IMG/VR virus record: IMGVR_UViG_3300033997_000243
Span: 186,001 to 250,000 of that record
Reading direction: 5' to 3' (one strand)
DNA: 64,000 nucleotides
Under the pieces are notes generated by a model, which saw nothing but the letters and a program-made list of their open reading frames with translations, ran no database searches and was not told the DNA's origin. The stretch's first letter is position 1. Each line of letters starts with the position of its first letter. The translations under genes and the position numbers were made by a program. Shown here piece after piece: positions 6,302-36,748 of this stretch.

Positions 6302-7561
6302 TTAAATTGCTACATCAGCTGGAATATGACCGCAGTGTTGATAACCTACTACGCGATAGTTTTGTTTACCAAGACCACGCAGATCAGTTTTTTGTTGAGG
6401 GCCAACACCAAAAGTAATTAACAGCGGCAGCGATTTAGAGTTTTCCAGATTGCTACCTTGTGTTTTGAATGCTTCGATATGGTTTTTGTATATGTGAGTA
6501 TCACCAACAAAAATATCCAGTTTACGAGGAATCATTCCGGTGACGGCAGCAACATAGCCATTTAGCATTGCATAGCTTGCTATATTAAATGGAGCGCCCA
6601 AAAATAAATCTTGACTGCGCTGGTACATGGCTAAACTTAATTCGCGTTTAGTCTCAACAAGACCGCTCATTGAAGCCAGAATTTTTAGCAAACTTACTTC
6701 GGACATTTCATACAATTCATTTTCAGTATATTCTACTGGAAAACCGTTGATTGTTGTTTGACCGTCAATTGTGTAAACATTATGAATTGCACGTTCTCCC
6801 ATAATGTTTTCGCCAGCATCGGCAGAACCAAATTGGAAAATTGTGTGACAGGCAGGTAATGCTTGCTTACCAATTTCAACCTGATCTTTTGGTGGCAATC
6901 CATCAACAGGAATTACGTTTGGATTCCAAGCATCCACAATAATACGACGACAATCTGGATAGTTCTTTAAACGATAGATCGCGTTTTTGATCTGATCAAA
7001 TTTGCGAATGAAATAATGCGAACGTACTTGAGTAGCAGGGTTATCAAAATACTCGTAAGAATAAGTTGATTGGCCTTGCAAGCGTGAATCGTTTTGATCG
7101 CAAACATCATCTGACAATGAACGTAAGTAATCAAACTTTGTTTCAAAGTAAGGATCTGTTGAGACAACACGATGAATTTCTTCACGACCTCGCCACTGCT
7201 CACCGTATACTGGGCCAAGATCGCCATTAGCATTTGCCCAACCATCCCAAATGTGAACATCTTCATCCAAAAGTTCTTGGATGTTTGTTTTGCCATCTAA
7301 AAACCAATGTAACTCTTTTGCGGTTCCCCTTAAAAACAATTGTTTGGTTGTAGGCATTGGAAAGCCGCTAAACAGATCTAAAGCTAAATGTTCACCAAAA
7401 GTTTTAATGGTGTCTTGCTGAGTTCTGTTAGATGAAGATGTGCCGTTGTTCAGAATTTTTTCGGCAAGAGCTAAAAAGTCAAAGTCAAATTGGTTTGCAG
7501 GAACTGCGTCACCAAATAATGCGTAACCTTGTTTTAATTTTCCAGGTGGAGATTTAGTCAT
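6302..7561 (-). CDS. thyA: thymidylate synthase with two insertions
   Basis: TTK, GDLGPVYGEQWR, RRIIVDAWNP, LPACH (catalytic Cys), YQRSQD.FLG.PFNIASY and GDTHIY motifs. Confidence 0.95.
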   Translation of the reverse strand: MTKSPPGKLKQGYALFGDAVPANQFDFDFLALAEKILNNGTSSSNRTQQDTIKTFGEHLALDLFSGFPMPTTKQLFLRGTAKELHWFLDGKTNIQELLDEDVHIWDGWANANGDLGPVYGEQWRGREEIHRVVSTDPYFETKFDYLRSLSDDVCDQNDSRLQGQSTYSYEYFDNPATQVRSHYFIRKFDQIKNAIYRLKNYPDCRRIIVDAWNPNVIPVDGLPPKDQVEIGKQALPACHTIFQFGSADAGENIMGERAIHNVYTIDGQTTINGFPVEYTENELYEMSEVSLLKILASMSGLVETKRELSLAMYQRSQDLFLGAPFNIASYAMLNGYVAAVTGMIPRKLDIFVGDTHIYKNHIEAFKTQGSNLENSKSLPLLITFGVGPQQKTDLRGLGKQNYRVVGYQHCGHIPADVAI

Positions 7562-8518: not shown

Positions 8519-8544
8519 AAAAAAAGCTGACCGAAGCCAGCTTT
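8519..8544 (-). terminator. intrinsic terminator closing the leader-family operon
   Basis: GCTGGC-TTCG-GTCAGC hairpin followed by 7 U on the minus strand. Confidence 0.8.
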
Positions 8545-8554
8545 AAATATTGGA

Positions 8555-8962
8555 TCATTGAAACTTAACGGTCTTACCCAAATCTTTTGTATTTACTGAA
8601 TACACGGAAGTGGATGGTGGACGTTTGAATTTAATTTCTTTTTGATCCACTGAAACAATTTGTACGGTAGCCACAGGTTTCCATGCTGGTTTTGCTTTGT
8701 CTGTGCCGATTTGTGCAAGTCTCTGCATTACATAAGTATTTCCAACTTTAGGTAACTTAGGTTTTGGCTTGCCTGTGACAGAAACTTTGTATTTATCGGC
8801 TTCTTTTATATCAGCCGCTAATTCTTTTTCAGCTTCTTTCAACTTGAGTTTGGCGTCAGATACTTTATCCTTAGACTTGGCAACTTTTGCCAAAAGTTGA
8901 GCATACTTTTTATCGTCCTTTAATTTGGATGGAACCGAACTTGTTGACACTAATACCTTCAT
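8555..8962 (-). CDS. leader-family protein (MKVLVSTSS), basic coiled coil plus small beta-barrel
   Basis: start reassigned to 8962 by the AAGGA SD and the shared leader. Confidence 0.75.
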   Translation of the reverse strand: MKVLVSTSSVPSKLKDDKKYAQLLAKVAKSKDKVSDAKLKLKEAEKELAADIKEADKYKVSVTGKPKPKLPKVGNTYVMQRLAQIGTDKAKPAWKPVATVQIVSVDQKEIKFKRPPSTSVYSVNTKDLGKTVKFQ

Positions 8963-8972
8963 TTTTATTTCC

Positions 8973-9470
8973 TTATTTCGATTTCTTAACATCTTTTAAA
9001 ATATAGGCAGCTAATTCAGCATACCCACCAGAATTTTTACCAGCACGATCTACTGGTTTGCGTAATTCAGTTAGTTTGTCAATTTGCTTTTCAACAGCAG
9101 ACAATTCTTTACGTAATTGTTTTTGTTTTTCCTTTAATGCTTTAAGTTTAGCATCATTCAGAATTTTGTCTGTGGTTTCAATATTCTTTTCCTCAGAACT
9201 TTGCTTTGAAGGTTTTACATAACTATCAAATATAAACTTAGATCCAATTTCAAGTATTGGTATAACTTTGGTCACACTGGAATTACCAAAAGCATTCTTT
9301 ACCGTAATTTTTCCAGCACGTATGCTTTTAACTCGCACAGCTTTTTCGTGTTTAATCCACTGTCCTACAGTGCGGCCTCTTACCGCAAACTCTTGCTTTT
9401 CTCTCAGCCAATAAACTTTTCCAACTTCAGGCATACTACGCTTAGCGCTTGTTGAGACTAGAATTTTCAT
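8973..9470 (-). CDS. leader-family protein (MKILVSTSA), small beta-barrel plus coiled coil
   Basis: shared leader; AAGGA SD. Confidence 0.75.
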   Translation of the reverse strand: MKILVSTSAKRSMPEVGKVYWLREKQEFAVRGRTVGQWIKHEKAVRVKSIRAGKITVKNAFGNSSVTKVIPILEIGSKFIFDSYVKPSKQSSEEKNIETTDKILNDAKLKALKEKQKQLRKELSAVEKQIDKLTELRKPVDRAGKNSGGYAELAAYILKDVKKSK

Positions 9471-10051
9471 TTTGATTCCTTGAGTTTTTTAAACATTGCC
9501 TGAATCTGTTTTTGCTTTGGAGCAAGTTCATCATGTAGACGATTAAACTCTTCTTCAGACTTTGCTTTAAGAATTTTATAATGATACTTGTGAATTTCGA
9601 TCAATCTCATTATAACTTCTTTTTCACGCTCTACAGCATTTGGGCCATTTAGAGCTTGTGTGATTTCTCTAAGTGCTTGCTGTGCGAGATTAATCCAACG
9701 TGTTTTATCAACGTCAGGCTCCCAAGTATAAACAGCTTCCATATATTCATCGGAAATTTTTTGACCAGCTGTTCTTGGTTTGTCAGTAGTGGCCTTTGGT
9801 TTTCTTTTATTTGGATCAAATGGAATAACAGAAGATTTACTTGAATAGCCACCTATCTGTTTGAATTCTTTTTCCTTTGATGCCCAAACTTTAATATCAG
9901 CTTCACTCATTCGTCTGGCTAAAAAATCGTCCATTGCACTATCTGCCAGCTTAGCCACTTGTCTATCTTCAGATAGTGTTTCGCGTTCAATAGCTTTATA
10001 CGCCAATTGTCTGATTGTAGGTCTAGCACTAACGCTGACTAAAATCTTCAT
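9467..10051 (-). CDS. leader-family protein (MKILVSVSA), helical
   Basis: shared leader; TGATG coupling to the upstream stop. Confidence 0.75.
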   Translation of the reverse strand: MKILVSVSARPTIRQLAYKAIERETLSEDRQVAKLADSAMDDFLARRMSEADIKVWASKEKEFKQIGGYSSKSSVIPFDPNKRKPKATTDKPRTAGQKISDEYMEAVYTWEPDVDKTRWINLAQQALREITQALNGPNAVEREKEVIMRLIEIHKYHYKILKAKSEEEFNRLHDELAPKQKQIQAMFKKLKESK

Positions 10052-10650
10052 CACACATCCTTTAATAAGTCTGCCGAAATGAACTGTCCTTTTTCGAGAA
10101 CAGTTTTGGGAACTATTTTAATACTGGAGTCTAAATATTTAGCAATCTTTTTTGTTGCATATATTGCCTCAAGTTTTCCTTTTCCTTTCCCTATTATTTC
10201 TTTTTCCTTCCACACCCAAGGTTCATCACGCCAGTCGAAAATTTTTGACACACTAGGATCTTTGTTCTTGCTGAGTGAATTCAGATGATCGATCAGAGAA
10301 TCTATATCGAATGCTCCAGCTTCGACATCAACTTTATAAAGTACACCAAAATCTTGCATCGATTTTGATCCGTTTATCTTTATCTTGGCGAATTCCTCAG
10401 CAACCTCACGATCAATAGAAAAACTAGAATCACCAAATACTGCGGTTCTTTTTAAAGTTTCAAATGATTTGGCCGGAAGTTTCATTCCTCTATAAGCTGT
10501 TTGTTTCATTTTAGTTATAAACATTGGAAACGCGGCTTTCATTTTGGGAACTAGATCTTTGTCATTTGTATGAATCCAATCAGACAATAACTCAATCTTT
10601 TCTTTGTTTAAGGATAAGGACTCTGAACTTAAATTTACTAAAATCTTCAT
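10051..10650 (-). CDS. ADP-ribosyltransferase (R-S-E clade) with MKILVNLSS leader
   Basis: AYRG, SSFS..REVAEEFA, GVLYKV and EKEII motifs; start at 10650 by GAGGA SD and ATGA overlap. Confidence 0.7.
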   Translation of the reverse strand: MKILVNLSSESLSLNKEKIELLSDWIHTNDKDLVPKMKAAFPMFITKMKQTAYRGMKLPAKSFETLKRTAVFGDSSFSIDREVAEEFAKIKINGSKSMQDFGVLYKVDVEAGAFDIDSLIDHLNSLSKNKDPSVSKIFDWRDEPWVWKEKEIIGKGKGKLEAIYATKKIAKYLDSSIKIVPKTVLEKGQFISADLLKDV

Positions 10651-10925
10651 TTCATTTCCTCGAAAACGACATTCCAATCTTGTTCAAGTTGATGACGATC
10701 TGGATCAGTATCATAATAAGCGGCAATCGCATAAACTAATTCGCCAATATCACCGGTCAACGTAAATGTTTTATCGACAATTGCCATTGCTTTTGGCATT
10801 CTGGAAATTTTTACCTTTCTACCAACTGCTTTTATTTCGTCTGAAATTTGTTGAGTCGATGAATTCTTTTTAGCCTTAACATGAGCAACAAAAGTACGAG
10901 CAGACAAACTAACTAAGATTTTCAT
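10647..10925 (-). CDS. leader-family protein (MKILVSLSA)
   Basis: start at 10925 with GGAG SD; shared leader. Confidence 0.7.
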   Translation of the reverse strand: MKILVSLSARTFVAHVKAKKNSSTQQISDEIKAVGRKVKISRMPKAMAIVDKTFTLTGDIGELVYAIAAYYDTDPDRHQLEQDWNVVFEEMK

Positions 10926-11238
10926 TAGATTCTCCAGAATAGTTTCCAAGACTTGAGTAACTATAATAAAGTGTTACACAAGTTGGACTGCCTGTACTAA
11001 TGTGACCATCATTTAATTGTGCGCCAAACTTTTCATTAAATTGCCTTGGAATATCAACACACATTAGTTGAGGCACCAACTCTTTCTGAATTTCACGATC
11101 AGTAACCAGCAGTGAAAGATAAATGGCTCCGCGTAAATCTTGTTTTGGTGGGTCAATAGCTACTTTTAAAAATGAAGCACCTACTTTACTAAGTGCTGGA
11201 ATGCTTGCAAATGCCTCAACTAATTTTTCTGTACTCAT
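10909..11238 (-). CDS. hypothetical protein (no leader)
   Basis: AAGGTG SD. Confidence 0.6.
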   Translation of the reverse strand: MSTEKLVEAFASIPALSKVGASFLKVAIDPPKQDLRGAIYLSLLVTDREIQKELVPQLMCVDIPRQFNEKFGAQLNDGHISTGSPTCVTLYYSYSSLGNYSGESNENLS

Positions 11239-11247
11239 ATCACACCT

Positions 11248-11736
11248 TTAATAACTATCAACAGCGGAATAGTCTATGTTATTCAAATCAAGTACGTGAG
11301 TAATGCCTTTAGCTACAGATAGATCGACTGGATCAATTGGATCATTAATTCGTATTGCTGCATTTATCAGATCATATGCAGACCTGAATTTATACTCATT
11401 GCTTACGGTTATAGTTAAATCTTGTAAAATTTCTTTAGCTTTATTAAATGCCGCAGCAGAAACTTCTTGACGGATTGTTTTAATTCTAGGAAACGACTCT
11501 CCTGTATGGAAATTTTTAATTGCTTCAGTTAATTCAGAGAATTGTTCAGGGAGAATTGTATGCAATCGTTTACCCAAAGAATTGCAAACTTTTTCAGTCA
11601 AATAGATAATGTTTCTTAACTCTGGAGTTGGCCCTTTGACTTTCTTAATAAGAGAACTTAATTGTTTATTGAATTTGGTAATCTGTTCACCTGTTGTTAA
11701 GTGCTTAGGTGCGCTTAAACTTACTAAGATCTTCAT
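11248..11736 (-). CDS. leader-family protein (MKILVSLSA), paralogue of 11781..12254
   Basis: shared leader; AFNKAKEIL and DPVDLS..KGITHVL match the neighbour. Confidence 0.75.
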   Translation of the reverse strand: MKILVSLSAPKHLTTGEQITKFNKQLSSLIKKVKGPTPELRNIIYLTEKVCNSLGKRLHTILPEQFSELTEAIKNFHTGESFPRIKTIRQEVSAAAFNKAKEILQDLTITVSNEYKFRSAYDLINAAIRINDPIDPVDLSVAKGITHVLDLNNIDYSAVDSY

Positions 11737-11752
11737 TTTTCTTTCCTTAACG

Positions 11753-11777
11753 AAAATATGGGCCGAAGCCCTATTTT
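11753..11777 (-). terminator. C(UUCG)G hairpin between genes (leaky terminator or stabiliser)
   Basis: GGGC-TTCG-GCCC followed by ATATTTT. Confidence 0.55.
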
Positions 11778-11780
11778 ATA

Positions 11781-12254
11781 CTACACCTTTATTCCGGCCA
11801 TTTTCAGTGCATCAGTAACGCCTTTATATTTTGAAAGGTCACTTACTGGATCTACGTTATCTAAAAGCCTTTTACAGGCGATTGCTAAATTTTTAGCGGT
11901 TTCCCAAGTTTCAGCTTCTGATCCAGTAAGCTTTGTTTGTGCAACAATTTCTTTCAATTTTTTGAAAGCTGTTTGACCTAACTTCAAAAACTTCGGATCT
12001 ACATTGCTGTAATCAGGAGTTATATTTGAGGCACTTGTATCACGAACTTGATCTGTAATTTCCACCATCAAATCGTAAGATTTTTTCAGGGAAGGGTGGC
12101 CACGAAATCCATTACACAACATTGTGCAATTGTTTAATATTGCCCAATGATCAGAATCAAAATGCTTAAACTTTTTGAAATACTTTTTAACAGCGGCATC
12201 TGTCGTAGCCAAAGTAACTTCAGATTTTGCACTTAAGCTTACTAAAATTTTCAT
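11781..12254 (-). CDS. leader-family protein (MKILVSLSA), paralogue of 11248..11736
   Basis: shared leader; AFKKLKEIV and DPVSDLSKYKGVTDAL. Confidence 0.75.
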   Translation of the reverse strand: MKILVSLSAKSEVTLATTDAAVKKYFKKFKHFDSDHWAILNNCTMLCNGFRGHPSLKKSYDLMVEITDQVRDTSASNITPDYSNVDPKFLKLGQTAFKKLKEIVAQTKLTGSEAETWETAKNLAIACKRLLDNVDPVSDLSKYKGVTDALKMAGIKV

Positions 12255-12273
12255 TTATTTTCCTTAATGAAAT

Positions 12274-12289
12274 AGGGGCCGAAGCCCCT
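12274..12289 (-). terminator. C(UUCG)G hairpin between genes
   Basis: AGGGGC-TTCG-GCCCCT. Confidence 0.6.
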
Positions 12290-12293
12290 TGTA

Positions 12294-23201: not shown

Positions 23202-24725
23202 ATGGATGATATTACAATTCGTATTGAAGCATTTGAAAACAGATCTGATCTTGATGGAGCAAGAGCAAAAACTTCAGAATTCGGATCAGATGTTGCTTTC
23301 GTACAAGTAGAAGAACCAGATCCGCTTAATATAAAATTTGCGTACAATGCCCAATCAGGTGTTTTATCTTTAATCCGTGGGCCTGATGATATTATTCAGG
23401 CCACTGGTTTTCTTACGCAAAAAAGTTTGGGAACTGGAAGAAGAGGAAAGAAAGGAAAAAGAGGCAAAGACGGTCGTGATGGGAAAACTGGTTACGATGG
23501 TCGTGATGGAAAATCTGGATGTCCTGGAATTCAAGGTGTAAAAGGAAAGAAAGGACTTCCAGGTCGTGATGCTGATGATGGCCCAATTGGGCCAATAGGT
23601 AAAGCTGGTTGTGGTGGTGCTGAAGGTGAAGAAGGTGAAAGAGGAAATAAAGGAATAATCGGCAATGAAGGATCTCAAGGTTTAATGGGATCTAGTTGCA
23701 AGCAAGGGCCGGATGGCCCTGACGGTGAAAAACCTTTGGAAACAGTTTTATTTTCTGACGTTCCACCAGTAGATAATCTGCTTGCTTTTATTTGGGCAAA
23801 ACCTGTCAACAGAGATCAAGTAGATCCAACAGATCCATTGCCGCCAATAGATACTCCGTCACCTTTAAATGGAAGAGTAGATAGTTTATCAATGAATGTT
23901 CCTCCGGTCGGTGCTGGTTGGTATCAAGCAATTCTTTATTTTAAAGTGAATTCTTTAAGTGGTGGAGTTGGGCCTTTTAACTATAAATGGTCTGGTGATT
24001 TTTCGACAAACGCAAATCTTTCAGTAGTTGATACTGGAATGACATCTGCAAACTTGAATTTGAAGTGTAGAATTTATATTGCTGGAACAGAAACCAGAAA
24101 AATTACTGGTGGAATTCGTTGTACAGTAACAGACGTAGGTAACGGCAACAATCCACTACTGTTAGATGCCACTTACACATTCAACATTGTTGCGACGGCT
24201 TCTGGAGGCGGTGACAGTGGAGGCGGTGGTGGAGGCTGTATCGTTTTTGGTCAACGTGTTAATTTAGTAAATGGTGAGCAAATTCAAGTTCAATCTATTT
24301 TACACGGTGACAGTTTAATCGGCGCAAGCATAGAAAGTTTGCCGGACAGCTCTAATGGAAACTCTAAATTTTTAGATTGGTTCACTTCTGATCTTAAATC
24401 GAAAAATACAACTGTCACGGCTATGTCTGTTAAACACGGAACTTACCATAGTTACTACAAAATAAATAATGTTTTGAAAATAACTTTGGAAGAGAACATG
24501 CTTTGCTTGCGCGGAGGCTATTGGTCTTTTAGACGAGTTAAAGATCTTCGTGTTGGAGACTATTTATATCATCGAACAGAAGGTGCTAAAGAAATTCTCA
24601 GCATTGAACAAATAAGTGAACAAGTTAAGACAGTATCTTTAGATGTTGAGACATCAGACACTTACTATGTTGAAGATTATTTAGTTCACAATCTGGATGT
24701 CGGTGGGCCTGTGATTAAGAAATAG
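23202..24725 (+). CDS. collagen-like tail fibre protein with a C-terminal Hint domain
   Basis: about 33 Gly-X-Y triplets, a beta domain, poly-Gly linker, then CIVFG...LVHN. Confidence 0.8.
   Translation: MDDITIRIEAFENRSDLDGARAKTSEFGSDVAFVQVEEPDPLNIKFAYNAQSGVLSLIRGPDDIIQATGFLTQKSLGTGRRGKKGKRGKDGRDGKTGYDGRDGKSGCPGIQGVKGKKGLPGRDADDGPIGPIGKAGCGGAEGEEGERGNKGIIGNEGSQGLMGSSCKQGPDGPDGEKPLETVLFSDVPPVDNLLAFIWAKPVNRDQVDPTDPLPPIDTPSPLNGRVDSLSMNVPPVGAGWYQAILYFKVNSLSGGVGPFNYKWSGDFSTNANLSVVDTGMTSANLNLKCRIYIAGTETRKITGGIRCTVTDVGNGNNPLLLDATYTFNIVATASGGGDSGGGGGGCIVFGQRVNLVNGEQIQVQSILHGDSLIGASIESLPDSSNGNSKFLDWFTSDLKSKNTTVTAMSVKHGTYHSYYKINNVLKITLEENMLCLRGGYWSFRRVKDLRVGDYLYHRTEGAKEILSIEQISEQVKTVSLDVETSDTYYVEDYLVHNLDVGGPVIKK
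24237..24692 (+). other. Hint (intein-like) domain 1
   Basis: block A C-I-V-F-G; block F/G VSLDVE...YYV..YLVHN; residue after HN is Leu; block B His replaced (TLEE). Confidence 0.85.
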
Positions 24726-24736
24726 GTAGGTATTTT

Positions 24737-25381
24737 ATGTTGACGAAAGTTCCAACTAAATTAATTTCAGCGCCTCAAGGAACAAACGGTCAAAGTCTTG
24801 TTGTTCAGGATAAAAGAATAACAGCTCAATCTACTGCAACTCAAACAGTTTCACCTATAGAAGATTGGTTTTATGATGCAAGCGTTGGTGTTCTCACAAT
24901 TCGTTTGTTGAATGGAACAACTCAAACTTTAGGTGGATTTCCAATATTATCTGATATTCCTGAAGGCCCACAAGGAGCACAAGGAGAACCAGGAATTGAT
25001 GGAAAAGATGGTCGTGATGGTCGTGATGGTCGTGATGGCGAAGCTGGTTGTGTAGGTGCAGCTGGTGAAAAAGGTGATGACGGTGATGATGGCCGTGACG
25101 GATTAGAAGGGCCAGTTGGCCCACCAGGTATTCAAGGATGTGAAGGCCCAAGAGGAAAACGTGGGCCAAAAGGTGAAGATGGAGATCAAGGCCCACCTGG
25201 AAAACAAGGTCTTCCAGGAATTGAAGGGCCACCTGGAAAAATGGGAAAACAAGGGCCACCTGGAAGAATAAATATTATTGTAAGTGAAACTGATCCAGGT
25301 CCAAGTTTAGGTAATGGTGGAATTTGGGTTAATCCTTTAATTGGTCAGATAGATGATGATACTGATCAATTTTTTACGTAA
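24737..25381 (+). CDS. collagen-like fibre protein
   Basis: about 33 Gly-X-Y triplets; (GGTCGTGAT)3 DNA repeat; C-terminal DPG...G.IWV. Confidence 0.85.
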   Translation: MLTKVPTKLISAPQGTNGQSLVVQDKRITAQSTATQTVSPIEDWFYDASVGVLTIRLLNGTTQTLGGFPILSDIPEGPQGAQGEPGIDGKDGRDGRDGRDGEAGCVGAAGEKGDDGDDGRDGLEGPVGPPGIQGCEGPRGKRGPKGEDGDQGPPGKQGLPGIEGPPGKMGKQGPPGRINIIVSETDPGPSLGNGGIWVNPLIGQIDDDTDQFFT

Positions 25382-34323: not shown

Positions 34324-34545
34324 ATGCCAAAGGCAGTTGTTTTGAGAGTCAGGGACGTTAAAAACGTCCTTGATCCTTTTCATATAAAGAATTTTCATTT
34401 AGGTGGCTGGCGTGTTCGTCATGAAAACAAATGGATCAGAATGGTTCCAGAAAATACTCTGATTAAAAATCCAGATCATGATCCGGCTGTACACGCACCA
34501 GATGATACTGAATTTCCGTTATATACACAGGTGGTATCAGAATGA
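34324..34545 (+). CDS. small virion-associated protein (start MPKAV)
   Basis: GGGAG SD; R..N.W pattern like the N-terminus of 26910. Confidence 0.55.
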   Translation: MPKAVVLRVRDVKNVLDPFHIKNFHLGGWRVRHENKWIRMVPENTLIKNPDHDPAVHAPDDTEFPLYTQVVSE

Positions 34546-35315
34546 TAACTAGACTACCTTTAGCAATGATCAACGCTGGATCAACAAGTTTAGCAGGACA
34601 AAATGTTACAGTTGTTCAGCCGGGAGTATTAGCTGCACAAGATCCGTCTGCAACTGTTCAACCTGCTGTTATACAAGGAACGTATGACGCGGATAGTGGA
34701 ACAGTTACAATAGTCAATGCTGATAATTCGATAGTTTTAATTTCTGGTTTTCCAACAATAAGAAGTTTACCAACTGGACAACGTGGGCCAGAAGGTAAAC
34801 AAGGTATTTCTGGAGTAGCAGGAAGAAATGGTCGTGATGGTCGTCCTGGAGAACAAGGTTGTCCTGGAGTAAAAGGTGATCGTGGCTTGCGAGGCCCAAT
34901 TGGGCCAGAAGGCCCACGAGGGCCGCAAGGAGAAATCGGCCCCAAAGGTGACAAAGGTGACAAAGGTGACAAAGGTGATGCAGGTATTGATGGCCTTGAA
35001 CCAGAATATGTAAAGACAAGTCGTGGAGCATCTATTTATTTACAAAGAAGCGGTGGAACAATTCAAAGTGGATTTTTTGAAAATGCTCTACAAGACAGAA
35101 CAATAACTTTACTGTTTCCGAGAAATTTAATAAACGGTGTTGTAAGTATTGTATTGTTCTTTAAGAATCCAAGTAGCTACCAAGCTCTGAATTATGAAAT
35201 AGGTGAATATTTCTACGATGATTTAGAAATTGGTGGTGTAACAATAACTCTTAAAGGAACTCCACCTGCACAGCTTGAGCCTTGGCAGTTCTGGTGGTTT
35301 GTAATGGGCGATTAA
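34542..35315 (+). CDS. collagen-like fibre protein with a C-terminal globular domain
   Basis: about 25 Gly-X-Y triplets; (AAAGGTGAC)3 repeat; shared N-cap. Confidence 0.85.
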   Translation: MITRLPLAMINAGSTSLAGQNVTVVQPGVLAAQDPSATVQPAVIQGTYDADSGTVTIVNADNSIVLISGFPTIRSLPTGQRGPEGKQGISGVAGRNGRDGRPGEQGCPGVKGDRGLRGPIGPEGPRGPQGEIGPKGDKGDKGDKGDAGIDGLEPEYVKTSRGASIYLQRSGGTIQSGFFENALQDRTITLLFPRNLINGVVSIVLFFKNPSSYQALNYEIGEYFYDDLEIGGVTITLKGTPPAQLEPWQFWWFVMGD

Positions 35316-35833: not shown

Positions 35834-36748
35834 ATGGACACACTATTAATAGGGCTAGTTAGTGAGTGTTTGAGTAAAGCTGTAGCTTTGGGACTGACGG
35901 CATCCAATAAAATAGTTTTAGCTGTAGGATCTACACAAAACGAAACAGCTTTAATTTATGTCAGTGCTGTTGAACCCACTGGGCCAGAACTTCCACTAAA
36001 TTTTATGTGGATAGTTTCAGATTCTAACAGTGCAGATTATCAGAAGATTCTGAGAAGAACTTCAAAGACTGCAAACTTTCCTTACCAAAATACTTACGAA
36101 TATCCAACGGTATATGCAAACGTAATAAATACATTTCCTGTATATGATGCTGTTGACGGTTTTATTCGCCCTGCATTAGAAAATCATAGATATTCTGTAG
36201 GAAATGCTCATGCTGCTACTCCAACTCAAATTGGAGCAGTTAATATAAATGGCGATACAATGCTTGGCAGTTTAAAAGCCAGAGCAAATTGGAGATCTGT
36301 TCCATTACAACCAGAAGAATTTATTCCTCTGCAAAAAATGACAGATAGCCTTAATAGTCAGACTCAAGGCTTTTACACTATTCTAATGCAGTTATTTAAT
36401 AGAATAGGTGCAGTAGAAACAACTAACGCTCAGTTAGCTCAAAGAATTACAGCTTTAGAGACAACTGGTGGTGGCCAAATAGATCCAAATCTTGTTCCAC
36501 GTACTTATGTACATGAACAAGCAGAAGCAGAACCTACTTGGATTATAAATCACAATCTAGGTACTCAATTCTTAATTGTACAACATTGGGTTCATATTAA
36601 TACACCTGATGGGATAAAATTGGAATTGGCTGGAGCGGAACAAGTTGTTATAGTAAATGACAATTTTGTTTTAATTGATCATACGATACCAGCAACAGGA
36701 ATAGTTGTGTTGTTGGAAGCAGGGTTAGAAGTAGTTCCAGAGGAATAA
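35834..36748 (+). CDS. virion structural protein with H.Q...W.I.HNLG domain
   Basis: GN.H..TP.QIGA..GD.M.G.L fibre motifs, coiled coil, HNLG domain. Confidence 0.65.
   Translation: MDTLLIGLVSECLSKAVALGLTASNKIVLAVGSTQNETALIYVSAVEPTGPELPLNFMWIVSDSNSADYQKILRRTSKTANFPYQNTYEYPTVYANVINTFPVYDAVDGFIRPALENHRYSVGNAHAATPTQIGAVNINGDTMLGSLKARANWRSVPLQPEEFIPLQKMTDSLNSQTQGFYTILMQLFNRIGAVETTNAQLAQRITALETTGGGQIDPNLVPRTYVHEQAEAEPTWIINHNLGTQFLIVQHWVHINTPDGIKLELAGAEQVVIVNDNFVLIDHTIPATGIVVLLEAGLEVVPEE

Follow-up and report, generated by a model that had tools for sequence, protein, structure and literature searches.

A nine-residue leader and a candidate ADP-ribosyltransferase in an exchangeable gene array of a jumbo phage

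Why would a run of small phage genes, whose products are otherwise unrelated, all open with the same nine residues, and what might the product of one such gene do to the host? The question is raised by a tandem array in a 64,000-nucleotide stretch of DNA (the window), which comprises positions 186001-250000 of the 319,518-bp IMG/VR virus record IMGVR_UViG_3300033997_000243, a sequence with terminal repeats and a G+C content of 37.6%. The source is an uncultured 320-kb jumbo myovirus of the PaBG/Lu11/NCTB group; its 784-residue tail protein shows 32-36% identity to those of PaBG, Lu11, NCTB and the Dickeya and Erwinia jumbo phages. One gene of the array encodes a 199-residue protein, here called P0001, which is most likely a small, basic and highly divergent mono-ADP-ribosyltransferase (ART) of the R-S-E clade. 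Coordinates below refer to the window unless a genome or contig prefix is given.

A candidate ART with an intact R-S-E motif set

The gene and its proposed active-site motifs are laid out as follows.

10051-10650, minus strand: the ART-like gene (P0001), 199 residues plus a TGA stop, isoelectric point (pI) 9.1.
10624-10650, minus strand: leader codons 1-9 of the ART gene (MKILVNLSS); the next gene opens with the same first 14 nucleotides, ATGAAGATTTTAGT.
10486-10494, minus strand: Y53-R54-G55 (TAT AGA GGA), the proposed NAD-binding arginine on strand beta1, aligned with the YRG of Vis and ModA/ModB.
10417-10425, minus strand: S76-F77-S78 (AGT TTT TCT), the proposed S-x-S, then the helix EVAEEFAK; aligned with the STS of Vis and the SF[ST] of Mod.
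10198-10206, minus strand: E149-K150-E151 (GAA AAA GAA), the proposed catalytic E-x-E, then IIGKGKGKLEAIY; aligned with the E-Q/D-E of Mod.

P0001 begins with MKILVNLSSESLS. The ATG at 10650 is the preferred start over an in-frame TTG at 10677, because it overlaps the stop codon of the preceding gene (ATGA), has a GAGG Shine-Dalgarno sequence and places the leader in register with that of the other leader genes. At the far end, the ART stop and the ATG of the following gene overlap by a single base (TGATG). Direct reading of the minus strand bears out the arrangement described in the initial annotation, namely YRG, SFS and EKE motifs in the R-S-E order behind a leader, the one correction being the strand. 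An aromatic residue accompanies the arginine (Y53-R54), and a strand spanning residues 50-59 is predicted at low confidence in both AlphaFold2 runs, as expected of beta1. S76 falls 22 residues past R54, in keeping with the R-S-E spacing of about 20-30 residues, with a helix at 81-88 after S78, and E149-K-E151 supplies the [QE]-x-E at the start of a strand.

A loose R..S.S..E.E pattern occurs in 10 of the 1129 open reading frames (ORFs) of the genome and in 0.57% of shuffled versions of P0001. Under a strict pattern, which demands [FYW]RG, S.[ST] and [EQ].E plus two hydrophobic residues at canonical spacing (features common in Mod- and C3-like ARTs), this ORF stands alone among the 1129, and the fraction of matching shuffles drops to 0.015%. 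As the strict pattern was selected after the sequence had been viewed, its uniqueness counts as supporting evidence and is no proof.

Conservation lends further weight to these motifs. The sole homologue recovered by a word-indexed search, P0002, is a 200-residue protein with about 70% identity (69-71% depending on the method), carried by a syntenic 7.3-kb JGI contig (L002). The R, S-x-S and E-x-E motifs are all invariant in P0002, and the ratio of nonsynonymous to synonymous substitution rates (dN/dS) for the gene pair is 0.105; hence, the gene is genuine and subject to purifying selection. Metagenomic scans (IMG/VR and JGI) returned only a near-identical 80.8-kb contig, and tblastn and megablast searches against 50,697 phage records recovered nothing. 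No ART paralogue was found elsewhere in the genome, which was also searched for Macro and ARH genes with negative results. The exhaustive HMMER scan (1.84 billion representatives) added only a 1600-residue repetitive protein (P0003); its repeats align to residues 15-134 without R54 and S76, and we judged the match spurious or uninformative.

Remote comparisons point to the ARTs from several sides. The ESM Atlas includes the exact P0001 protein with a model of predicted template-modelling score (pTM) 0.70, and ART families (PF01129, PF03496 and Vis) occupy six of its ten nearest structure rows, with template-modelling (TM) scores of 0.47-0.52 over 127-141 residues. Among its feature neighbours, the nearest named clusters are DUF4765, DRAT, Mod_ADP_RT, ADPrib_exo_Tox, NarE and Lart1, the first of these having an ART-like fold (PMC7883292). 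When a two-sequence profile was run against 177,635 PDB sequences, it gave a single match, the arginine-ART Vis (4xzj, E 0.45). In this alignment, TAYRG falls on TAYRG and SSFS with the following helix on the STS region; it ends before the E-x-E. Direct searches were silent or nearly so: BLASTP of P0001 against ModB found no significant match, while phmmer against the PDB gave only a gp8 match at E 1.4 for P0001 and none for P0002.

Using profile-profile comparison (hhalign), we found 166-168 columns to be collinear from end to end with a profile of the T4 ModA/ModB family, the R, S-x-S and E-x-E being matched. Against a 16-sequence Mod profile the score is 24.8 (P 0.005), which none of 300 column shuffles reach; dropping one member (L016) for its internal stop lowers the score to 19.0 (P 0.04), which 5 of 150 shuffles attain. 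A default-settings comparison with a two-sequence ModA/ModB alignment returned nothing. We regard the Mod profile comparison as weak to moderate evidence, suggestive of an ART. In an independent MAFFT alignment with ten Mod proteins, the columns of W25, K31, R54, G55, S76, F77, A84, F87, R141 and E151 are invariant, and these cover the Mod-specific 'LWQCMENK' region and the invariant arginine ahead of the E-x-E. The excluded member (L016:241-870) is a ModB homologue on an IMG/VR T4-like contig, with an in-frame stop nine codons past its YRG that could reflect a pseudogene, a suppressed stop or an error.

Both AlphaFold2 runs, although of low confidence, give the same order of secondary-structure elements: helices, the R54 strand, a helix, the S-x-S, a helix, a strand, inserted helices, the E-x-E and two strands. 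This predicted order fits the ART plan, the inserted helices forming an insert of about 25 residues between the beta3 region and the E-x-E. Taken together, we consider it probable that P0001 has an ART fold with an intact R-S-E site. Its closest recognizable relatives appear to be the T4 ModA/ModB family and the Vis/C3-like arginine ARTs, and it belongs to no curated ART family, because it falls below their thresholds. The identification of the gene as an ART in the initial annotation is thus supported by several independent, individually weak lines (the ESM Atlas, Vis, the Mod profile and the conserved motifs), and neither a curated family model nor a confident AlphaFold2 model could be added to them.

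A leader peptide shared by ten basic proteins

Ten ORFs of the genome start with the pattern MK[IV]L[IV]S.S, their nine-residue leaders having the consensus MK[IV]L[IV]S[LTV]S[AS]. Seven of them, including the ART gene, lie in tandem in the window, all on the minus strand. The remaining members of the array and its boundaries are listed from its first gene to its last.

11781-12254, minus strand: first leader gene of the array, 157 residues, MKILVSLSA; a G+C hairpin lies upstream at 12274-12289.
11248-11736, minus strand: leader gene, 162 residues, MKILVSLSA; its cassette is absent from some relatives.
10909-11238, minus strand: gene for 109 residues without a leader, inside the array; conserved in L002.
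10647-10925, minus strand: leader gene upstream of the ART gene, 92 residues, MKILVSLSA; its stop overlaps the ART start, and it is 92% identical in L002.
9467-10051, minus strand: leader gene downstream of the ART gene, 194 residues, MKILVSVSA; its ATG overlaps the ART stop by one base.
8973-9470, minus strand: leader gene, 165 residues, MKILVSTSA; replaced in L002 from codon 10 onward.
8555-8962, minus strand: last leader gene of the array, 135 residues, MKVLVSTSS.
8523-8544, minus strand: terminator-like hairpin closing the array, at which L002 homology resumes.

The three leader ORFs outside the window are at genome 79947-80276, 102847-103341 and 318727-318936.

Past codon 9 the leader proteins are mutually unrelated and match no family. 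The leader codons vary synonymously, with serine encoded by AGT, AGC, TCA, TCG or TCT, leucine by TTA, CTA or TTG, and valine by GTN; selection therefore acts on the leader peptide and not on the leader DNA. All ten leader proteins are basic, with a pI of 8.9-11.4 as against a median of 6.65 for the long ORFs, the chance of which is about 6e-6 under a conservative null. The same leader is found on five genes of L002. Outside this lineage it was not found: a scan of IMG/VR with the leader DNA recovered only this lineage and two chance ORFs of 16 codons, and leader genes are absent from the corresponding syntenic stretch of phage NCTB.

A promoter scan gave nothing above chance, and no shared promoter motif was found upstream of the leader genes. 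Some of these genes are preceded by G+C-rich hairpins (GGGGCTTCGGCCCC-like) and then by TATTT..TTAAGGAAA, as seen at 11737-11780, at 12255-12293 and at genome ~79895-79946. The hairpin and TATTT motif is not a genome-wide promoter, with only two copies matching closely.

The leader genes outside the window have contexts of their own. The one at genome 79947-80276 (L006:2948-3277) encodes a 109-residue protein of pI 11.4 directly after the tail sheath and tube genes; hence, at least one leader gene belongs to the late structural module. The next gene (L006:3284-3961) encodes a 226-residue protein with a KMPT-N domain (E 3e-12), and a weak KMPT-N match (E 0.098) also lies behind the leader of a 318-residue cassette of L002 (L002:5195-6151, MKILIATSA) that is absent from this genome. 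The gene at genome 102847-103341 on the plus strand (L007:2848-3342) sits after a type IB topoisomerase-like gene and encodes a 164-residue protein of pI 9.4, which reads MKILISLSGEKFYRG... and has an aromatic-Arg-Gly motif (FYRG) directly behind the leader. Its hhalign comparison with the Mod profile places YRG on YRG at a score of 18.7 (P 0.04), although the S-x-S and E-x-E are not clearly preserved; the protein is possibly an ART-like cargo that has been truncated or has degenerated. The nine leader proteins other than P0001 score 8.9-18.7 against this profile, and only the 164-residue protein comes near the 19.0 of the ART pair.

The leader as a boundary of cassette exchange

Close relatives of the phage differ in the content of the array, and the differences follow the leader. 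These comparisons rest on assembled contigs, and one of the relatives (X5) may come from an RNA library. The 162-residue cassette is missing from a near-identical contig (L028) and from the majority variant of two subsurface runs (X2 and X4), with a joint of 11241->11783. The interval 11242-11782, which holds this cassette and its upstream hairpin, is thus a presence/absence polymorphism in the subsurface population, with a depth of 39 for the form that has it and 243 for the form without, and the joint shows 9 nucleotides of microhomology.

The ART gene itself is lost in X5, a wastewater relative of about 95% identity. The affected span is as follows.

10037-10651, no strand: span containing the interval missing in X5, with the joint 10037->10637.

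The joint skips 599-600 nucleotides, 14 nucleotides fit both of its sides, and depth inside the ART gene is zero. As ATGAAGATTTTAGT opens both the ART gene and the gene that follows it, the loss amounts to exactly the ART cassette, from leader ATG to leader ATG. A second site of variation in X5, at the junction of the 165- and 135-residue cassettes (8934-9033), has 98 nucleotides replaced by 153 other letters. In the comparison of this genome (G000) with L002, homology spans the preceding gene and the 27-nucleotide leader and ends right after codon 9. Here, L002 has its 318-residue cassette in place of the 165- and 135-residue cassettes, and homology resumes at the hairpin at 8523-8544.

Because the cassette differences among relatives are bounded by the leader, the ART is an accessory, exchangeable cargo, and exchange has its fixed 5' boundary in the leader. 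The leader system to which the initial annotation had tied the gene is accordingly real, as seen in its ten ORFs, peptide-level conservation, basic cargo, and gain and loss of cassettes at the leader.

A proposed mechanism

From what is known of R-S-E ARTs, R54 and S76/S78 would hold NAD+, and E151, together with E149, would catalyse the transfer of ADP-ribose. A glutamate in the first position of the E-x-E goes with an arginine acceptor in Alt, ModA, Vis and the iota and cholera toxins. Since the motif of P0001 is likewise E-x-E, the likely acceptor would be an arginine of a host protein. The leader, by analogy with the capsid targeting sequence (CTS) of T4, its internal proteins and Alt (PMC9026906, PMC9503650), might address the proteins that bear it to the assembling virion, in which case they would enter the host alongside the DNA. 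Host proteins could thus be modified by the ART as soon as infection begins, in the service of either takeover or anti-defence.

We see such injection of the ART from the virion as standing at about an even chance. A broader proposal is conceivable, if more tentative: that this jumbo phage, with head genes unlike those of T4, independently evolved a T4-CTS-like label, which loads a changing set of small basic effectors, including a new ART family, into the particle, and that the same leader, through its coding sequence, also serves as the cassette boundary, giving a plug-and-play character to the delivery of takeover and anti-defence proteins.

Weighing the alternatives

Several observations weigh against the above picture, some bearing on delivery and others on the enzyme itself. 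With respect to delivery, the ART might instead act intracellularly and unpackaged in the manner of ModA/ModB, the leader being a strand for a partner or chaperone, a control of stability or localisation, or a homology patch for recombination. ModA and ModB, the nearest relatives and the nearest recognizable family of P0001, are not virion proteins. The array shares its strand with the RNase H and thymidylate synthase genes and does not lie among the head genes. Further, neither a head protease nor a conserved cleavage site was found. In phmmer searches over the genome, T4 gp21 and gp23 had no match, whereas gp18 and gp19 (sheath and tube) did; Pfam S77 and Gp23 searches were negative with uninformative controls, and a search for the S78 head protease gave no match. 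PaBG and its relatives have been named the 'Lupandier group', with reports of a capsid protein of the HK97-like kind and of virion proteins that undergo proteolytic processing (PMC7412058).

The sequence past the leader tells a similar story. The first glutamate lies at a variable distance of 10-43 residues in the leader proteins, and the SE of LSSE (including E10) is deleted in P0002; therefore, sites of the T4 type (L/I-x-x-E) or the SPN3US type (A-x-E) are not conserved. Prohead cleavage of the SPN3US/phiKZ type takes place after A-x-E or S/A/G-x-E (PMC10052503). A tripeptide of the A-x-E type is found near the leader in only some of the leader proteins, and the phage falls outside the phiKZ group by the placement of its 784-residue tail protein (PMC7412058). 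Leader cleavage of the T4 or SPN3US kind is thus not supported by the residues at these positions, and the leader might be retained or else cleaved at another place.

The leader also demonstrably marks recombination boundaries, as this alternative would have it. However, a pure recombination handle would be expected to be conserved as DNA, whereas it is the peptide sequence of the leader that is preserved, its codons varying synonymously. Moreover, all ten carriers are basic, as are the T4 internal proteins, and one leader gene comes directly after the tail tube gene in the late structural module. Hence, purely intracellular action of the ART seems to us unlikely, while still deserving serious consideration.

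With respect to the enzyme, P0001 might be no ART at all, but a fast-evolving orphan in which three short motifs have come together by chance. It has no significant match in any sequence library: no model of Pfam (0 families in hmmscan with E up to 10), PHROGs or NCBIfam matches it, a search for PF03496 over the whole genome found none, and an exhaustive HMMER scan of 1.84 billion representatives recovered no ART relative. AlphaFold2 failed to fold it, reaching a predicted local distance difference test score (pLDDT) of 37 with its own two-sequence alignment, and the model was without any Foldseek match. With Mod rows in the alignment the pLDDT was 45 and Foldseek returned ART matches (Vis, 1.9e-4), which are non-independent because of those very rows. 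The loose motif is present in about 1% of ORFs, and the significance of the profile-profile comparison is fragile, with a P of only 0.005 to 0.04 depending on the profile. Against chance, several independent, if weak, lines converge on the ART superfamily and the strict motif is unique in the genome. Likewise, the nine other leader proteins furnish a built-in comparison in which only the FYRG protein nears the score of the ART pair. We therefore hold this alternative to be improbable.

A last alternative keeps the ART fold but turns it to another job: hydrolysing NAD+ as a glycohydrolase, RNAylation in the manner of ModB, ADP-ribosylation of nucleic acids or, with catalysis lost, binding alone, as in the DUF4765 domain of CNFY. 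In its favour, DUF4765 heads the feature neighbours, and in CNFY this ART-like domain binds no NAD+ (PMC7883292); NAD-capped RNA is a further substrate that ModB transfers (PMC9503650); and a helical insert lies ahead of the E-x-E. Degenerate ART-like domains, however, usually lose the canonical R / S-x-S / E-x-E set, which is complete here and conserved under purifying selection, and we consider this alternative improbable.

Other features of the genome

The array is flanked on one side by the genes for RNase H and thymidylate synthase and on the opposite side by PAAR and baseplate genes on the other strand. The thymidylate synthase (6302-7561, minus strand, 419 residues) has a PHROG match that spans 397 residues for 279 profile positions, which suggests an insertion. 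Its NCTB homologue is likewise long (471 residues). Further along the window, adjacent tail-fibre-like genes at 23202-25381 and 34542-35315 on the plus strand have a common collagen-like/tail-fibre repeat region (phrog_8745, 38766, 6320), and an HNH endonuclease-like gene lies among structural genes at 35834-36748. At genome 904-2130 (L034:904-2130), among replication genes, is a gene for a 409-residue protein that matches PHROG 17197 'peptidase' (E 3e-63) and has no Pfam match; it is near the genome end that holds the leader gene at 318727-318936, whose product has 69 residues.

Implications

T4 can make injected cargo of any small protein by means of a tiny tag at its N-terminus. If the leader described here is a packaging address, that solution would prove to be convergent and general in large myoviruses, and a simple sequence rule would become available for finding injected effectors in uncultured jumbo phages. 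The nine further leader-tagged proteins would then be candidate anti-defence or takeover factors, and a nine-residue targeting tag could be put to practical use in loading phage particles with foreign proteins. As for the enzyme, P0001 would define a new and very divergent branch of ARTs beside ModA/ModB, and its arginine targets in the host could reveal a new point of takeover.

Comparison with known systems

The system appears to combine features of two T4 precedents: the injected ART Alt, and the internal proteins with their short shared leader, small basic cargo and variable locus. As a protein, P0001 is most like T4 ModA and ModB. These too are phage enzymes of closely similar size (200 and 207 residues against 199), and share with it, in order, N-terminal helices, [LY]YRG, SF[ST] with an A..F helix, and E-x-E with hydrophobic residues and a glycine. 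The Mod invariants corresponding to W25 and K31 (the 'LWQCMENK' region) and R141 are also present in P0001. They differ in being only ~17-22% identical to it and in having no shared leader, whereas P0001 is encoded in a cassette array of a jumbo phage that is not T4-like. Of the toxins, Vis from Vibrio splendidus and the C3-like arginine/asparagine ARTs come closest, Vis having an identical TAYRG and its family a place among the ESM Atlas structural neighbours. Vis, however, is a bacterial toxin and not phage cargo, and P0001 is set apart by its helical insert before the E-x-E.

As an injected enzyme, the proposed counterpart is T4 Alt, which is non-essential, has a seven-residue N-terminal propeptide and enters the host together with the DNA (PMC9026906). 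Both would be phage ARTs of the R-S-E type that travel in the particle, and P0001 is likewise dispensable, being absent in X5. Alt differs in that it is ~3.5 times larger, belongs to the Alt/VIP2 family (PF03496), which P0001 does not match, and is cut by gp21, of which no homologue was found here, nor any conserved cleavage site. ARTs are often packaged in myovirus heads (PMC9503650), and the MuF-fused or polyvalent-protein phage ARTs (Iyer et al., PMC9503650) are alike in concept, as head-delivered enzymes that modify host macromolecules. Those are addressed by covalent fusion to a head domain, whereas the proposed address here is a nine-residue leader on a free-standing small protein.

For the leader itself, the parallel is the T4 CTS, a peptide of about 10 residues at the N-terminus of unrelated small basic proteins, which are encoded by adjacent genes and vary between phages (PMC9026906). 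IPI, IPII and IPIII of T4 thus resemble the present array of a nine-residue leader, ten basic proteins, a variable tandem locus and leader-bounded indels and swaps. The T4 peptide MKTYQEFIAE is nonetheless unrelated to MKILVSLSA, which has no Glu-specific site at its end; the head genes of this phage are not T4-like at the sequence level, and the targeting role of its leader is putative. Virion-delivered phage ARTs and leader-addressed cargo are both known already. What this locus would add to them is a very divergent branch of ARTs, an unrelated nine-residue leader in a phage without T4-like head genes, and direct evidence of a leader as a junction of cassette exchange.

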